From: Orbicella franksi
Lineage: Eukaryota
Assembly (NCBI GenBank): GCA_964199315.1
Contig: OZ116704.1
Coordinates: 28,830,001 to 28,894,000 of the forward strand
Length of the DNA stretch: 64,000 bases
Direction: 5' to 3'
Part shown: piece by piece, positions 54,001-59,112 of the stretch
Layout of the letters: every line of letters begins with the position of its first letter
Numbering within the stretch: the stretch's first letter is position 1
Made by a program: the position numbers and the translations under genes
The notes under the pieces: model-generated
What the model saw: the letters and a program-made list of their open reading frames with translations, nothing else
Database searches by the model: none
What the model was told of the DNA's origin: nothing

Positions 54001-57000
54001 TGGGGATATTTGGTTTTTTGACAGAAAGAGACTGGAGCTGAAAGAGTTGCTATGGCAACACCATTAAGGGAGTCATTTTGTTTCTTTTGTGATGTACATT
54101 TGTGGTGCCAAGTTTCAAGAACACTGCTTCAATATTCCTAAAGATATTGCTTATTCAGTATTTTACCATTTTTAAGTTGCAAACAATATGACGTCATCAC
54201 TGATCTAATTTGCATAATAGAAAAATGTCAATATCTCTAAAACGAAAAAAGATATTTCAAAAAGAAAAACGCCATTCTTCTGTATTTTGAAAGGTGTTTC
54301 AAATGATATTTTTCATGTCATGTGCACTTTAAGAAGCTCCTTTCACCATGCTTAAAACTTGAAATACTTGGTGCTGATTGCTCTAAGTAAGAATTTACAT
54401 AATACCCATTAAAGTCTCTCTGTACATCTCACCTGCTCGCAGAATTCTTTTTAGTTGATGCTTTAGATGTCTTCTTATTTTGGCCAGTCTTTCCTTTATC
54501 TCCAAAAGCTGTGGAAAACAAAGAGGAGAGAATCTCACAATCAAATACAATCACTGTCATTAAAAGTTATAAAATACAATCCCTTGACAAAATTACATTT
54601 ATTTACTGAATATGTGTAACAGTAAAGCACAGTCTAATGACCAGAGTTTATTCCCAGTTTCTGTGGCATGTAGTGACTATGGGAATATATCTCCAAGCGA
54701 CCATGCCATTTTCTTTTTATTATATATTTAAATTCTCATAATACTTAAGGTGATTCCTCACATTTGCATTGCGCATCCTTACTACGCATAATTTATGGCA
54801 TCACTAGCACGCACGCGCACATTGAAAACATGGCGGATTTGCCTTGATATTGAGTTCTGTCAGTTGAAAAATGGCTATAGCTCACTAACAAGCTCGGGCA
54901 GCCCAATTTTTTTCCCAGTCGTTTTAATCAATTAATTATTAGTTTTGCGTGAGAAAAGACTGATCTGATTTCTATTGCTGAAAATTGAAGAAATAAGGAA
55001 AATAGCACCTGCACTGTAGTCTTTTCTATTTTGCATTTTGATAGCCATGACAAGCAATTTGGTTCCAATATTTTAACAAGGATTCAGCTGTCTGTCAAAA
55101 TCAAACTTAAAAAGTTTATTTGTGTCCGACACAAGTATTGACTGCAGTTTGAGGCGTGTTTTCATGAGTCTGGGCTCACAAAGATTTCACAATAACCTGG
55201 AATGCGTTCTTGTAATAAGCATTAAATAATGTCAAAATCAGATATTTTCAATGCCTCACTGCTCCTTAATGAACATGGGCACCCCCCATTTTTATTTTAG
55301 AATTAAAGTTCTCATATGATCAATATTCAGTGGACAAAGTTTGAACAAAAATCTATTGACAGTTTTATTTCAGGGGAATAACCTTAATAATGTTTTTGGC
55401 AATTTTCCAAAGATTTTCTACCACTTTCTAAAGATTTCCAAAAAATGTTTGAAGACTAGACAAATGTTTCCGAACATTTTCTGATGATTTCCCAATGTTG
55501 CTGAAGACATCCAAAGAAGATCTGAAGATGTTTCAATCATACACCAACAATTTAAGTGCAGTTAAGGGACAAAAATGGTATCACATATGTGTGGATAAAA
55601 ATGATATCCTCACATGTGGGATATTGTTCTATAATAAAATGTAGAAACAATGTAAAAGTAACATGGCTTGCCAAAAGAAGACGATATGTGATGTGATGTG
55701 ATGTGGAGTCCTGACTTAACCATTAAGCTCCCACAATAATGGCTTTTATACCTTTCTCAAATTTTTCAAATTGTGACTCCAAGTCCTTCTTGTCTGTGCA
55801 TATCTTACATGCTGCCCTGTTCACCTCCTTGGCCCTTGCAAAATTTCCCATTTCAAAAAATGCTTGTGCATATCTGTACTGAGCCTGAAAATAAACATGG
55901 CATTTTCACAGTCGATTCAATACTAGTTGACAGTTCAAGATTATGCTTTCCATGTGCAAATAAAAATGCAATACGAGAATGTTGTCAAATACTTGTCAAA
56001 AAATAGTTAGTGGCAAGTCTGGTGCCGCATTTTGTCTCGTCTTGTTTTGCTTTTCATTGATTTCTATGTCATTGCAAAGGGATTAAGGTGAAAACAGAGT
56101 CTACGTTGTGTAATGTATGCTTATTTTTAACCCTGGACTATATTAAATTTTGTTGAGGCTTTACTCTACATGGATATTTGGAAAGCTAAATAGGAAAACT
56201 GAATATAACCATCAACAGAGTTCACTTTTTATAATTTTGCAAAAGTCATTTGCTGGACTAAGGTCAGCTAGTGGAAAGTTGATATGTTCACTGCCCTATC
56301 ACTAATGTAGGGGAAAGCAAAGAGAGTGCCTGTTCTTACAACAACTAGTCAAAAGGGCCAAGGGTGTCACTTACAGTTGGTGTTCCCTTGCAAGAGGATT
56401 GGCTTCTAGTAAATGGAGTGTGCAAGTGAAGATTCTGTGCTTTTTCATGTGTATTTTGTTACAAAATACTTGAGGAATGTACCAAAAATGAAAGATTTTG
56501 CCTTAGAGGATTTTGAATCCCTGAGCAAGTGGGTAAGTGCTTATTTGCAATCCCATATTCAGGAAGGTTCAATTGAAAAAAACACTGGCTGCTACAGCTG
56601 GGGAATCTGAAATGCCTACCTTGTGCCAGTCTGCTTTCAGCACCACTGCCCTCCTGCCATCAGTAAGAGCACTCCTATCAAACACACAGGTGAAAGTTAC
56701 ATCTACATCTTGACTACATCTACATTTACATCTAAATTTGATTATGTCAGTGAAGTCATTAGAGATCACACCAACGTTTAAAATGTTACTTAGACATCAC
56801 ACCAATGTTAAAAATGTTACTCTTCAATTGTTTGCTCTTGTACAAATTTAATTTGTGAACGTACAGTTGGCAAATCTTCTGCAATAGAGGGCCAGACTGT
56901 CAATATCGAGAATTTGCAAACGGGACTTTGAGCGTGATGCTCAACGAGATTGCTTATGAATTCTAAAGGTCTCTGATGAGTCTCTTGGCCAAGACGAAAC

Positions 57001-59112
57001 GCTGTGTCAGACTAGCCACGAACGTTTCACAAGTATTTGACAAATGTTTCACGGCTTTATTAAAGAAATTATTTTTCAGCCTAAAACTTGAGAACTTTGT
57101 AAGGAGGCTGCAGACCAAAGTGTGTAAGAGAAGGCCAAAAGGTCTGAGGGCCCTAAGGACAAGCCCTCTACCTTGCTACAAAATACAATATGGATTTGTT
57201 CTCAGCAGTCCCAAGCTCAACTCCATAGCTATTTAAAATGACAAACTTCAGTTTTAATCCGCGTATAACTGGAGTTAAATACTAACCAGAGATCTTTTGT
57301 TTTTAGGAAGCTCTGAGACCTGTTGCCGTAAAGAACGTGATTGTAGGGACTGCAAAAAATGGAAGTCAAAAAATAATAATTAGAAGATTGATGGTACAGA
57401 GTGGTTTTCAATTGAGTGTCATAAAACCAAAACAAAACCAATAACTTACATGTACCATAGACTACTCCATCAATTTCAAACCATTGTAAAACAAAAACCA
57501 AAGTCACTGCCTGATTACTTTTGACGCTCAATTGAAAACGGTTCTATGATAAACTATTGCCTATAACTGCTAGGACTGTTGTTTGCACCTGAAATGTATG
57601 TAGCTCATCACTGTAATGTACATTGTGAGCAGATTGCATTTATGTTATTAGCATTACAGTACACAGGTCTTTTCAGACAAGAACCTTTGTTTCAAAAGTG
57701 GGCTTATCTTGCAAGGGAAGACTCATTACTTACCATTGCATGCTGGACAAAAGAAAATTATTGTTAAAATTTGATTAAGTGGCTGGGGTGGTTCCCTAAG
57801 GGATGGTGCTTTAGTAACAACAAACCAGTAATCCTCATAATGGTATAATAATAACCTTAATTACCACAAACCGCTTCTTGGAATTGGGTCACTTATTAAA
57901 TATTAAATACGTTCAGCTGAGTAACAAGGGTGCTACATTTGATCAATACAGTACCTCACATGTAATGCTCTTGAATAAGTTGAAATAGCAGCTGAAAATT
58001 TTGCACTTGAAAATGCCTCATTCCCTTCCTTCTTCTGGTCAGCAGTTCGCTGTAAATTAAATGAAAGTAAAAATGACAGTATGAGATCGGACACTACTAT
58101 AACTCTATTATTAGATCCACCATCAAAGGAAAATGAAAAGAGCAACCTGTGATTGCTCTTCAAATTCCACACTTGTAATCGTTTTCTAGTTTTATTTATC
58201 TATAAGCTATCTAGGGCCTAAACTGTGGGCAAAGCTGAGTGAAGACCTTAGAAAATCATAAAAACCTTAACAAATTTAAAAGTCGCCTAAGACCACCGAA
58301 CTTCACCGAACTGATAAGCAAAAATTGTAGCAATAGTTTTTTTTAGGTTTTTTTTTAACCTTGCCTTGTATATTAGAAACAATTTTACATGATGGGAATT
58401 TTAATCACTTTCATTAGCATAGATTAATCTCGTGAGTGAAAATTGTAAACAGCAGTATTTTATAATTAACTATGTCCTGTATACTTAGAATTAATCTTTT
58501 TATGATTCAAATTTTAGAACTCTTATTAGTACAGGTGTCCCCAGTTAGCTTACTGTTTTGTAGTTAGCTATAACTGATAAACACTAGTTATTTAATACCT
58601 ACTTAAATATTTATAGAGAAGCATAGATCATACTCACATCCTCCTCTTCCTTGCATCTCTTGTTGAATTTTTCAACAAGATCCTCACCTGCTGCTAACAG
58701 TTTGATATGATCAGCCACTGCAAATTAAAATGAATTTGTCATTTGCTTTGTTTAAGCATGAACATGAATGTCAAGCCCAAATGAAAAACACAACACATGA
58801 TGAAGTATTGTTTTCTCAACCCAAATTGATATCCTTGTGTTCTTTCTTCACAATCAAAATCAAAGATAAAATGCCATTAAAAAAAAAAATCCAGTTTTGC
58901 CCCCAATTTCTAAGGTCCCCTTGTTATGAATAAGAATAGTAGTAATTTATTACAGTAATATTCTGGGAAAAAATCCAACCCCCGTCCCCCCCCCCCCCCC
59001 CCTCCCTGCCCATAATTAAAGCTGTCCTTTACCTTGCATACCTCACTGGCCATTATTTTCGGTTGCGAGGAAGCTTCATAAAACAACTTCGTCTGTGCCT
59101 TGCATTCTTGTT

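Follow-up and report, generated by a model that had tools for sequence, protein, structure and literature searches.

A complete type I hammerhead motif in Orbicella franksi lies in what is very probably an old, solo insertion of a 216-nt non-LTR retrozyme

The window analysed here is a 64-kb stretch of Orbicella franksi contig OZ116704.1. Within it, a hammerhead motif lies in a copy of a non-coding 216-nt repeat, here termed family A, and an exon of a host gene separates this copy from a decayed fragment of the same repeat. The features are as follows:

55982..56039, minus strand: decayed 58-nt fragment of the repeat, unit positions ~166-219 (blastn; alignment to the family majority)
56620..56674, minus strand: expressed host exon of 55 nt, with acceptor AG and donor GTAGG (mRNA contigs; splice signals; open frame)
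56825..57049, plus strand: 5'-truncated copy of family A, the hammerhead-bearing 216-nt repeat, with a length of 1.04 units (genomic BLAST matches cover exactly this interval)
56968-57013, plus strand: type I hammerhead motif (sequence; full-length RF00163 alignment; strict descriptor; conserved pairing in 51 distinct family sequences)
57008..57009, plus strand: predicted self-cleavage site, GUC followed by A, between C17 and N1.1 (C17 is 57008 by hammerhead numbering)

The motif reads GGTCT CTGATGA GTCT cttggcca AGAC GAAA CG ctg TG TC AGACT on the plus strand. Helix I is formed by 56968-72 with 57009-13 (5 bp, of which one is G.U), and helix II by 56980-83 with 56992-95 (4 bp, loop at 56984-91). 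Helix III consists of three pairs (A56999-U57007, C57000-G57006 and G57001.U57005) around a CUG loop at 57002-04. The conserved core sequences CUGAUGA and GAAA occupy 56973-79 and 56996-99, respectively, and all core positions are present: C3, U4, G5, A6, N7, G8 and A9; G12, A13 and A14; the pairs A15.1-U16.1 and G10.1-C11.1; and an H17 that is not G. Because the 5' and 3' ends of the motif both lie in helix I, which is open, the motif is of type I.

We searched both strands of the window with a strict descriptor that specifies the core, the G10.1-C11.1 pair, minimum lengths of 4 bp for helix II and 2 bp for helix III, whose first pair is A-U, an H17 that is not G, and a 5-bp helix I. Its single match is 56968-57013, and it has no match in 300 dinucleotide shuffles. 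A loose core-only pattern is uninformative (24 matches in the window, 26 expected by chance). In a permissive scan with the Rfam Hammerhead_1 model (RF00163), the motif aligns end to end with all core positions matched (23.1 bits, E = 0.007 in a 1-kb search). Since this score is below the gathering threshold of 34 bits, a whole-window scan at the gathering score is empty. The covariance-model check proposed in a first-pass annotation of this DNA thus returned a match, albeit a sub-threshold one. The type I hammerhead with every core nucleotide that the same annotation had described agrees with sequence, descriptor and RF00163 alignment alike. The motif also belongs, as that annotation had suggested, to a family other than that of the remaining hammerhead-like motifs of the window, which receive no Rfam hammerhead match even at E <= 1. 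The copy had further been suggested to fold as a monomer. In nearest-neighbour predictions for the 46-mer on its own, of the window copy as of the majority form, the hammerhead is not the minimum-energy fold, and the "dimer" that they yield is driven by the palindromic loop 2 and not by helix III; this folding result is counted as evidence neither for nor against the motif. The complete hammerhead motif at 56968-57013 is real.

The motif had been described as hidden in an intron of TTC3. An expressed exon at 56620-56674, with an open frame and splice signals on the minus strand, is 150 nt away from the window copy of the repeat, and mRNA contigs of 697-3157 nt match 56619-56675 without mismatches. 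TTC3-type domains are encoded 17-23 kb from the window copy, also on the minus strand. The TTC3 intron thus has partial support, and we infer that the domains and the exon belong to one TTC3-like host gene. Because the gene is on the minus strand, the ribozyme strand is antisense to the pre-mRNA, which bears only the inactive complement, and no active ribozyme is hidden there.

At least 114 genomic BLAST matches of ~90% identity span exactly 56825-57049. As had been suggested, BLAST thereby defined the monomer, a unit of 216 nt, and its copies, which include short tandem arrays. To measure divergence, and solely for that purpose, we built a majority-rule reference of the 216-nt repeat. The window copy is 90.2% identical to it (22 differences in 225 positions), compared with a median of 98.7% over 49 copies, and is the most diverged copy sampled; 18 of 21 differences are private. 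Four substitutions fall in the ribozyme, at N7, in the distal helix II pair, in loop 3 and in a G-C pair that became G.U, all of which are tolerated positions. Relative to the family majority, helix II is one pair shorter and helix III has G.U in place of G-C. The density of substitutions in the ribozyme (4/46) is equal to that in the rest of the unit (18/179). Neither a tail nor a TSD is significant at the window copy. The 5' junction of the copy was found in DNA runs under two organism labels, from at least six studies, and none of the contigs from four RNA libraries matches the copy. Because it has only one ribozyme, the copy cannot release unit-length or circular RNA by itself. We read it as an old, solo, 5'-truncated, dead-end relic with no partner cleavage site, unremarkable within an already known kind of element and of little importance as a specific copy.

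The flanks of the motif had been thought to match nothing else in the window, which is not so: the minus-strand fragment at 55982-56039 belongs to the same repeat. Of the ribozyme, this fragment retains no more than the 3' half, in which G12 is altered (AAAA for GAAA); it is an independent dead insertion in the neighbouring intron. We considered and rejected the possibility that the fragment and the window copy form an inverted pair, since a host exon that is conserved and expressed separates them.

Across the genome, the 41-nt ribozyme of family A has at least 170 matches with up to three mismatches, 71 of them exact, while the reversed control has none. Copies are scattered across at least 14 large contigs, in short head-to-tail arrays of 1-5 units with 216-bp spacing (up to ~4.8 units), and most are within ~1-2% of the majority sequence; the ribozyme is the best conserved block of the repeat family. 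The 5' starts of the arrays vary between unit positions 1 and 203. Their 3' ends do not vary: one arm stops ~19-29 nt inside the following unit, the inverted arm at ~212-221. This gives the arrays a tail of ~30 nt on one side only; inverted partners are arranged head to head, and TSDs of 8-9 bp are present at three loci (L012, AAGTTATA; L015, AATGATAT; L017, GTTAATAGA). Insertions of Penelope-like elements are often truncated at the 5' end and contain partial tandems; next to them lies an inverted copy that is itself 5'-truncated, and a tail of 30-40 bp is present at just one end (PMC8557442). The insertion architecture of family A matches these features, of which the window copy itself shows only the 5' truncation. 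An association with retrozymes and Penelope-like elements, which the first-pass annotation had noted for small type I hammerheads, is thus borne out by family membership and insertion architecture. The GC content of family A is 45%, under the 50% retrozyme criterion, and its TSDs exceed the 4-bp criterion. Two ribozymes flank a unit within the ~150-450 bp range of the tandem criterion in family A, but not in the window copy, with its 1.04 units and one ribozyme.

Three sister families, B to D, are homologous to family A across the entire unit. In families A-D, the core is kept and the helix II pair 10.4-11.4 is U-A in 25 sequences and C-G in 25 sequences. Helix III shows a change from G-C to A-U as well as double changes at two pairs, loop 3 measures 3-9 nt, and position H17 is occupied by C or A. 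Among 51 distinct family sequences, 95.3% of helix cells are paired, compared with 21-40% when the partners are slid; the covariation comprises few independent events, mostly between families. The sister families preserve the hammerhead fold by compensatory changes, and hence supply the related genomic copies with altered stems that the first-pass annotation had called for as a check. An inspection for loop 1/loop 2 tertiary contacts, as in canonical natural type I hammerheads, shows families A and B to share no helix I extension or internal loop. Other copies of family A, majority-type ones included, score 21.1-22.8 bits with RF00163, below the 34-bit gathering score, and family B has no RF00163 match even at E <= 1. 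Because the coral hammerhead superfamily formed by families A-D (several hundred copies) is below the Rfam threshold, standard annotation pipelines miss it.

Family A is also present in RNA-labelled runs of five studies. Contigs of 241, 246 and 236 nt, from RNA libraries of three studies (three of four runs), cross the 216-nt unit junction; strand, ends and circularity are unreadable from these assembled contigs, and transcripts of tandem arrays, or DNA carried over from a repeat present in more than 170 copies, would look identical.

Given these observations, we propose that 56825-57049 is very probably an old, solo, 5'-truncated insertion of a non-coding, non-autonomous 216-nt animal "non-LTR retrozyme," which persists as a relic antisense to the TTC3-like gene. 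In the life cycle that we envisage for family A, tandem copies would be transcribed and the hammerheads would cleave the transcript into 216-nt units, which a host RNA ligase probably closes into circles. Penelope-like elements may then supply the reverse transcriptase and GIY-YIG endonuclease that copy the unit RNA back into DNA, with copying that would begin at a fixed 3' site and extend over a variable distance. A fixed 3' start combined with a variable copying length would account for the short tandem arrays and their variable 5' ends, as well as for the inverted partners and the tail on one side. The window copy would subsequently have gathered ~10% private substitutions, the four in the ribozyme falling by chance on tolerated positions. 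Animal retrozymes were recently proposed, on the basis of vertebrates, to be non-autonomous riders on Penelope-like elements, and the presence of all three Penelope-type insertion scars in family A lends this proposal cnidarian support.

Alternatively, the 216-nt unit could be the terminal repeat (pLTR) of an autonomous Penelope-like element, and the window copy a solo pLTR fragment. We regard this possibility as unlikely, even though the insertion architecture is exactly Penelope-like (PMC8557442), GIY-YIG-encoding elements abound in the genome (149 matches in 1018 candidates), and a 2026 preprint finds retrozymes to be sister to pLTRs (bioRxiv 10.64898/2026.07.22.740005). At 25 non-redundant loci, the arrays are bordered by unique DNA and TSDs, with no long ORF adjacent. 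The family A and B units have no blastn similarity to 30 Penelope-like loci found via GIY-YIG, a sample dominated by one family of these elements, and the sampled loci bear a different, minimal hammerhead. This is exactly the type known from the pLTRs of Penelope-like elements (Cervera & de la Pena 2014, PMC4209133), whose helix III is almost absent, whose long helix II has a bulged base, and which is proposed to act as dimers. Like family A, the elements with minimal hammerheads show Penelope-type insertion structures and occur in very large numbers in invertebrate genomes; family A differs from them in its closed 3-bp helix III and its 216-nt unit without an ORF. Moreover, a 3.78-kb tandem repeat that holds one family B copy contains no RT or EN domain. 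This same tandem duplication, together with the tandem arrays of family A, might instead point to satellite-type DNA that spread by unequal crossing-over or segmental duplication, with the hammerhead as a passenger that has no role in the spread. Such an origin appears highly improbable, given that short arrays over at least 14 large contigs have each their own TSD, a variable 5' truncation and a constant 3' end, that most copies are ~1-2% from the majority, and that the fold is kept by compensatory change between families.

The preserved core in the window copy could also reflect co-option, in which the ribozyme is under selection because its cleavage ends or processes a transcript made from the plus strand of the TTC3-like locus, antisense to the gene. 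If true, this would be a domesticated ribozyme in a cnidarian gene, intact through ~10% divergence. All four ribozyme substitutions are at tolerated positions and the insertion is common to many samples under two organism labels, as co-option would have it. The equal density of substitutions inside and outside the ribozyme, however, gives no sign of constraint, and with ~15 critical positions and ~9-10% divergence we calculate a probability of retention by chance of roughly 0.2. The weakening of both helices II and III, and the absence of an RNA contig of the copy from the four RNA libraries, also argue against selection, and we consider co-option very unlikely. Chance alone can leave an intact-looking core in an insertion that is dead, solo and antisense, and such motifs should therefore not be read as functional without family context. 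That the motif itself is a chance match to the hammerhead consensus might be suggested by its sub-threshold Rfam score and by the loose core pattern, which is no more frequent than expected; the full descriptor, however, was never matched in the shuffles, and this explanation is effectively refuted because the motif is inherited from a repeat family.

The kind of element to which we assign family A, the animal non-LTR retrozyme, has already been described (PMC7229834; bioRxiv 10.64898/2026.07.22.740005), including a 224-nt representative in the coral Acropora millepora, Amil224 (Cervera & de la Pena 2020, PMC7229834). Like Amil224, family A has a non-coding unit of a few hundred nucleotides with a type I hammerhead, and it shares with published animal retrozymes the low GC content (45% in family A), the dispersed tandem arrays in a coral genome, the TSDs longer than 4 bp, and head-to-tail junctions in RNA libraries (PMC7229834). 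The ribozymes differ. That of Amil224 has an 8-bp-type helix I, a GGCC/GGCC helix II and an ACAG/CUGU helix III (PMC7229834), whereas in family A helix I has just 5 bp and lacks an evident loop 1, loop 2 has 6-8 nt, and helix III has 3 bp. Arrays of family A are also smaller, with 1-5 units compared with up to 62 in published retrozymes (PMC7229834). Published retrozyme circles are unusually stable, while the predicted 216-nt circle of family A is not (circular MFE of -46.2 kcal/mol against a shuffle mean of -50.6, z = +0.96). Sequence and primer comparison rejected identity of family A with the published A. millepora retrozyme, and the two are different families.

The retrozyme hammerhead of the mussel Mytilus galloprovincialis (construct Mg353; PMC7229834, supplement) has nearly the same shape as that of family A, with CUGAUGA, a GUCU/AGAC helix II, GAAA, a short CG-rich helix III and a GUC site, and it lacks the archetypal loop 1-loop 2 contacts. 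Mg353 nevertheless cleaves as a single motif at ~0.1 per min (PMC7229834), an activity measured for the mussel element, whereas cleavage by family A is predicted. The mussel unit is 350-390 nt long (PMC7229834) and, outside the ribozyme, unrelated to family A. The Amil224 family, for its part, is also present in the Orbicella franksi genome, as 242-bp arrays.

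The segment at 56968-57013 (+) reads GGTCT-CTGATGA-GTCT(cttggcca)AGAC-GAAA-CG(ctg)TG-TC-AGACT and holds all invariant hammerhead positions, with a GUC triplet that places the predicted scissile bond between 57008 and 57009. Its helices are as follows.

Helix I: 5 bp, including one G.U
Helix II: 4 bp
Helix III: A-U, C-G and G.U, closed by a triloop

A strict descriptor demanding the core together with G10.1-C11.1 and the three helices matched only this segment when run on either strand of the 64-kb window, and had no match in 300 dinucleotide-preserving shuffles, in agreement with the complete core, three pairing stems and cut after 57008 described in the first-pass annotation; the core-only pattern is not rarer than chance in the window. 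The Rfam Hammerhead_1 model, proposed there as a check, aligns full-length (23.1 bits, E=0.007 in 1 kb), but the default scan called no hammerhead because this score lies below the 34-bit gathering score. Nearest-neighbour folding of the isolated 46-mer does not favour the hammerhead fold; since such models leave out the hammerhead tertiary core, we give this result little weight. The hammerhead motif at 56968-57013 is real.

Querying the 497-Mb assembly that contains the window with 56800-57100 gave at least 114 matches of ~90% identity, all bounded by query positions 26-250 (window 56825-57049) and many spaced 216 bp apart. Given these shared bounds and this spacing, the motif is part of a 216-nt repeat (family A), which supplies the monomer, copy number and tandem arrays that the annotation had suggested seeking by BLAST. 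Its statement that the flanks match nothing else in the window does not hold, as a second family A fragment lies nearby.

56825-57049, plus strand: family A copy of 1.04 units with one ribozyme
55982-56039, minus strand: 58-nt family A fragment, deader, with G12 lost
56620-56674, minus strand: expressed host exon with an open frame, ...tttgatAG/GAGTGC...CACAAG/GTAGGC

The majority ribozyme of family A is GGUCU-CUGAAGA-GUCUC(uuggcc)GAGAC-GAAA-CG(ccg)CG-UC/AGACU (slash, cleavage site). Its 41-nt core occurs in 170 genome copies at ≤3 mismatches (71 exact), and a reversed-pattern control matched nothing in the genome. Pattern searches also recovered three sister families, of which family B aligns with family A along the entire unit.

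Ribozymes of family A and its sister families.
Family A: 216 nt; N7 = A; helix II GUCUC/GAGAC; helix III ACG(ccg)CGU; site GUC
Family B: 217 nt; N7 = U; helix II GUCCC/GGGAC; helix III ACG(agcug)CGU; site GUA
Family C: N7 = A; helix II GUCCC/GGGAC; helix III ACG/CGU, longer loop 3; site GUA
Family D: N7 = C; helix II GUCCC/GGGAC; helix III ACA/UGU; site GUA

Across 51 distinct ribozyme sequences, standard pairs fill 95.3% of cells, versus 21-40% with partners slid. The related copies with compensatory stem changes that the annotation had called for are present: 25 sequences have U-A and 25 have C-G at pair 10.4-11.4, and double changes occur in two pairs of helix III as well, the independent events being few and mostly between families. 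The core is unchanged across families while the loops and H17 vary, as would be expected of a working hammerhead. Four family B copies (including L055:274-321(-) and L056:274-321(-), in sampled genome pieces) lack ~17 nt (AGACTAGCCACGAACAA); the loss begins within 1 nt of the predicted cleavage site and removes the helix I 3′ strand, and may represent a subfamily that arose by deletion or a remnant of cDNA made on self-cleaved RNA. Another piece, L045 (G000:C1:22526500-22536499), carries at least four tandem repeats of a 3,781-bp unit, each with one family B hammerhead and no Pfam domain in any ORF of ≥60 aa.

In Acropora millepora, type I hammerhead motifs number over 6,000 and fall into 16 families, one of which has a canonical ribozyme in 220-240 bp tandem retrozymes and makes abundant circular RNA, while the non-canonical families are ascribed to autonomous elements (Cervera and de la Pena 2020, PMC7229834). 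Family A is a short, stand-alone non-coding unit and a new member of the same kind of element as the A. millepora retrozymes. The coral retrozyme cloned in that study belongs to a different sequence family, also found in this genome (132 matches, arrays of 242-bp period). One such array has at least 11 units (G000:C8:18934787-18937242 and C8:18939539-18939778), followed on the same strand, ~2.3 kb downstream, by a GIY-YIG match. The published ribozyme nearest in shape is a mussel retrozyme motif, CUGAUGA-GUCU...AGAC-GAAA-CGCGCG-UC, which has no canonical contacts between its loops and yet, as a single motif, cleaves at ~0.1 per min (PMC7229834).

The insertion architecture was read from 25 non-redundant family A loci. 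Arrays start anywhere from unit position 1 to 203, and the main arm ends constantly ~19-29 nt inside the next unit. A head-to-head inverted partner arm is frequent and ends ~30 nt earlier (unit position 212-221), and target duplications of 8-9 bp bracket the whole structure (AAGTTATA in L012, AATGATAT in L015, GTTAATAGA in L017). Family A shows all three hallmarks of Penelope-like element (PLE) insertions: copies truncated at the 5′ end with partial tandems, a truncated copy lying inverted alongside, and a tail of 30-40 bp confined to one end (Craig et al., PMC8557442). Just upstream of one array, a long perfect-looking hairpin (L013:1218-1371; plant miRNA models at 41-46 bits, below thresholds) is probably an inverted-repeat element.

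The genome is rich in PLEs, with 149 scored matches among ~1,000 candidates in a GIY-YIG profile search. Sampled PLEs carry a classical minimal hammerhead ~200 nt downstream of the endonuclease; in an abundant family (L069-L098; e.g., L087:-1970, L096:+1973), with open frames of up to 796 aa in some copies, it reads GUAC-CUGAAGA-A-GGCUGG(uuug)CCAGCC-GAAA-UAUA-GUAC, ~200 nt 3′ of the GIY-YIG domain. No autonomous partner of family A was identified among the sampled PLE loci. The PLE hammerhead has an additional A ahead of helix II, a core layout similar to that of a near-perfect palindrome at 49705-50012, whose two arms both carry hammerhead-like strings (CTGAAGA A GACT...AGTC GAAAC); it has no Rfam hammerhead match even at E≤1, and only hairpin-type miRNA models score (42-43 bits, far under thresholds). 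A core-only string at 45794-45858 (+), CTGAAGA TGAC...GTC GAAA TGTC AGTCATC, likewise has no Rfam hammerhead match at E≤1.

Family A is present in RNA-labelled coral runs of five studies. When contigs of four RNA libraries were placed on the window at 85% likeness, three libraries each gave one contig (241, 246 and 236 nt) that runs from 56984/92 to 57040 and then goes back 216 to 56825. These contigs are sequence closing on itself after one unit, although, for a repeat present in over 170 copies, assembled contigs do not separate circles, tandem transcripts and DNA carry-over. They share 90-95% identity with the window and show the majority variants, and therefore derive from copies other than the window's. 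No contig in the four libraries corresponds to the window copy; the sole perfect matches in this part of the window are mRNA contigs over 56619-56675.

Having a single ribozyme, the window copy offers no second cut that could free a unit. Among the full-length copies sampled it is the most diverged (90.2% identity to the majority versus a median of 98.7%; 49 copies), and 18 of its 21 aligned differences are private, many being CpG transitions. Four of the changes lie within the ribozyme.

N7: A to U, a free position
Distal helix II pair: C-G to C.A, which leaves helix II with 4 bp instead of 5
Loop 3: one base
G15.3-C16.3: to G.U

Substitution density is equal inside (4/46) and outside (18/179) the ribozyme, so there is no sign of constraint on this copy; by our own arithmetic, the odds of retaining the ~15 critical positions by chance are roughly one in five. 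No tail or target duplication is recognisable at the copy, and an imperfect 31-nt tandem duplication at 56765-56824 (ATCACACCAA[C/T]GTT..AAAATGTTACT...) adjoins its 5′ end. Because DNA runs from at least six studies, under two organism labels, contain the 5′ junction, the insertion is shared and not recent. The fragment at 55982-56039 is a separate insertion, as the expressed host exon stands between the two.

The annotation's placement of the motif in a TTC3 intron stands in part. Further along, minus-strand ORFs carry a TTC3-type winged helix, scored above cut-off at 36.3 bits, together with weak matches to a RING finger and to a TTC3 helical domain; these ORFs presumably form one gene with exon 56620-56674. 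Exon signals and TTC3-type ORFs place the host gene on the minus strand, so the ribozyme strand is antisense and the host pre-mRNA carries only its inactive complement. The window copy is an ordinary relic: decayed, solo and antisense. Beside the TTC3-like gene, an uninterrupted 498-aa ORF at 29039-30535 (-) has a full-length match of the Strabismus / Van Gogh type (PF06638, 588.7 bits).
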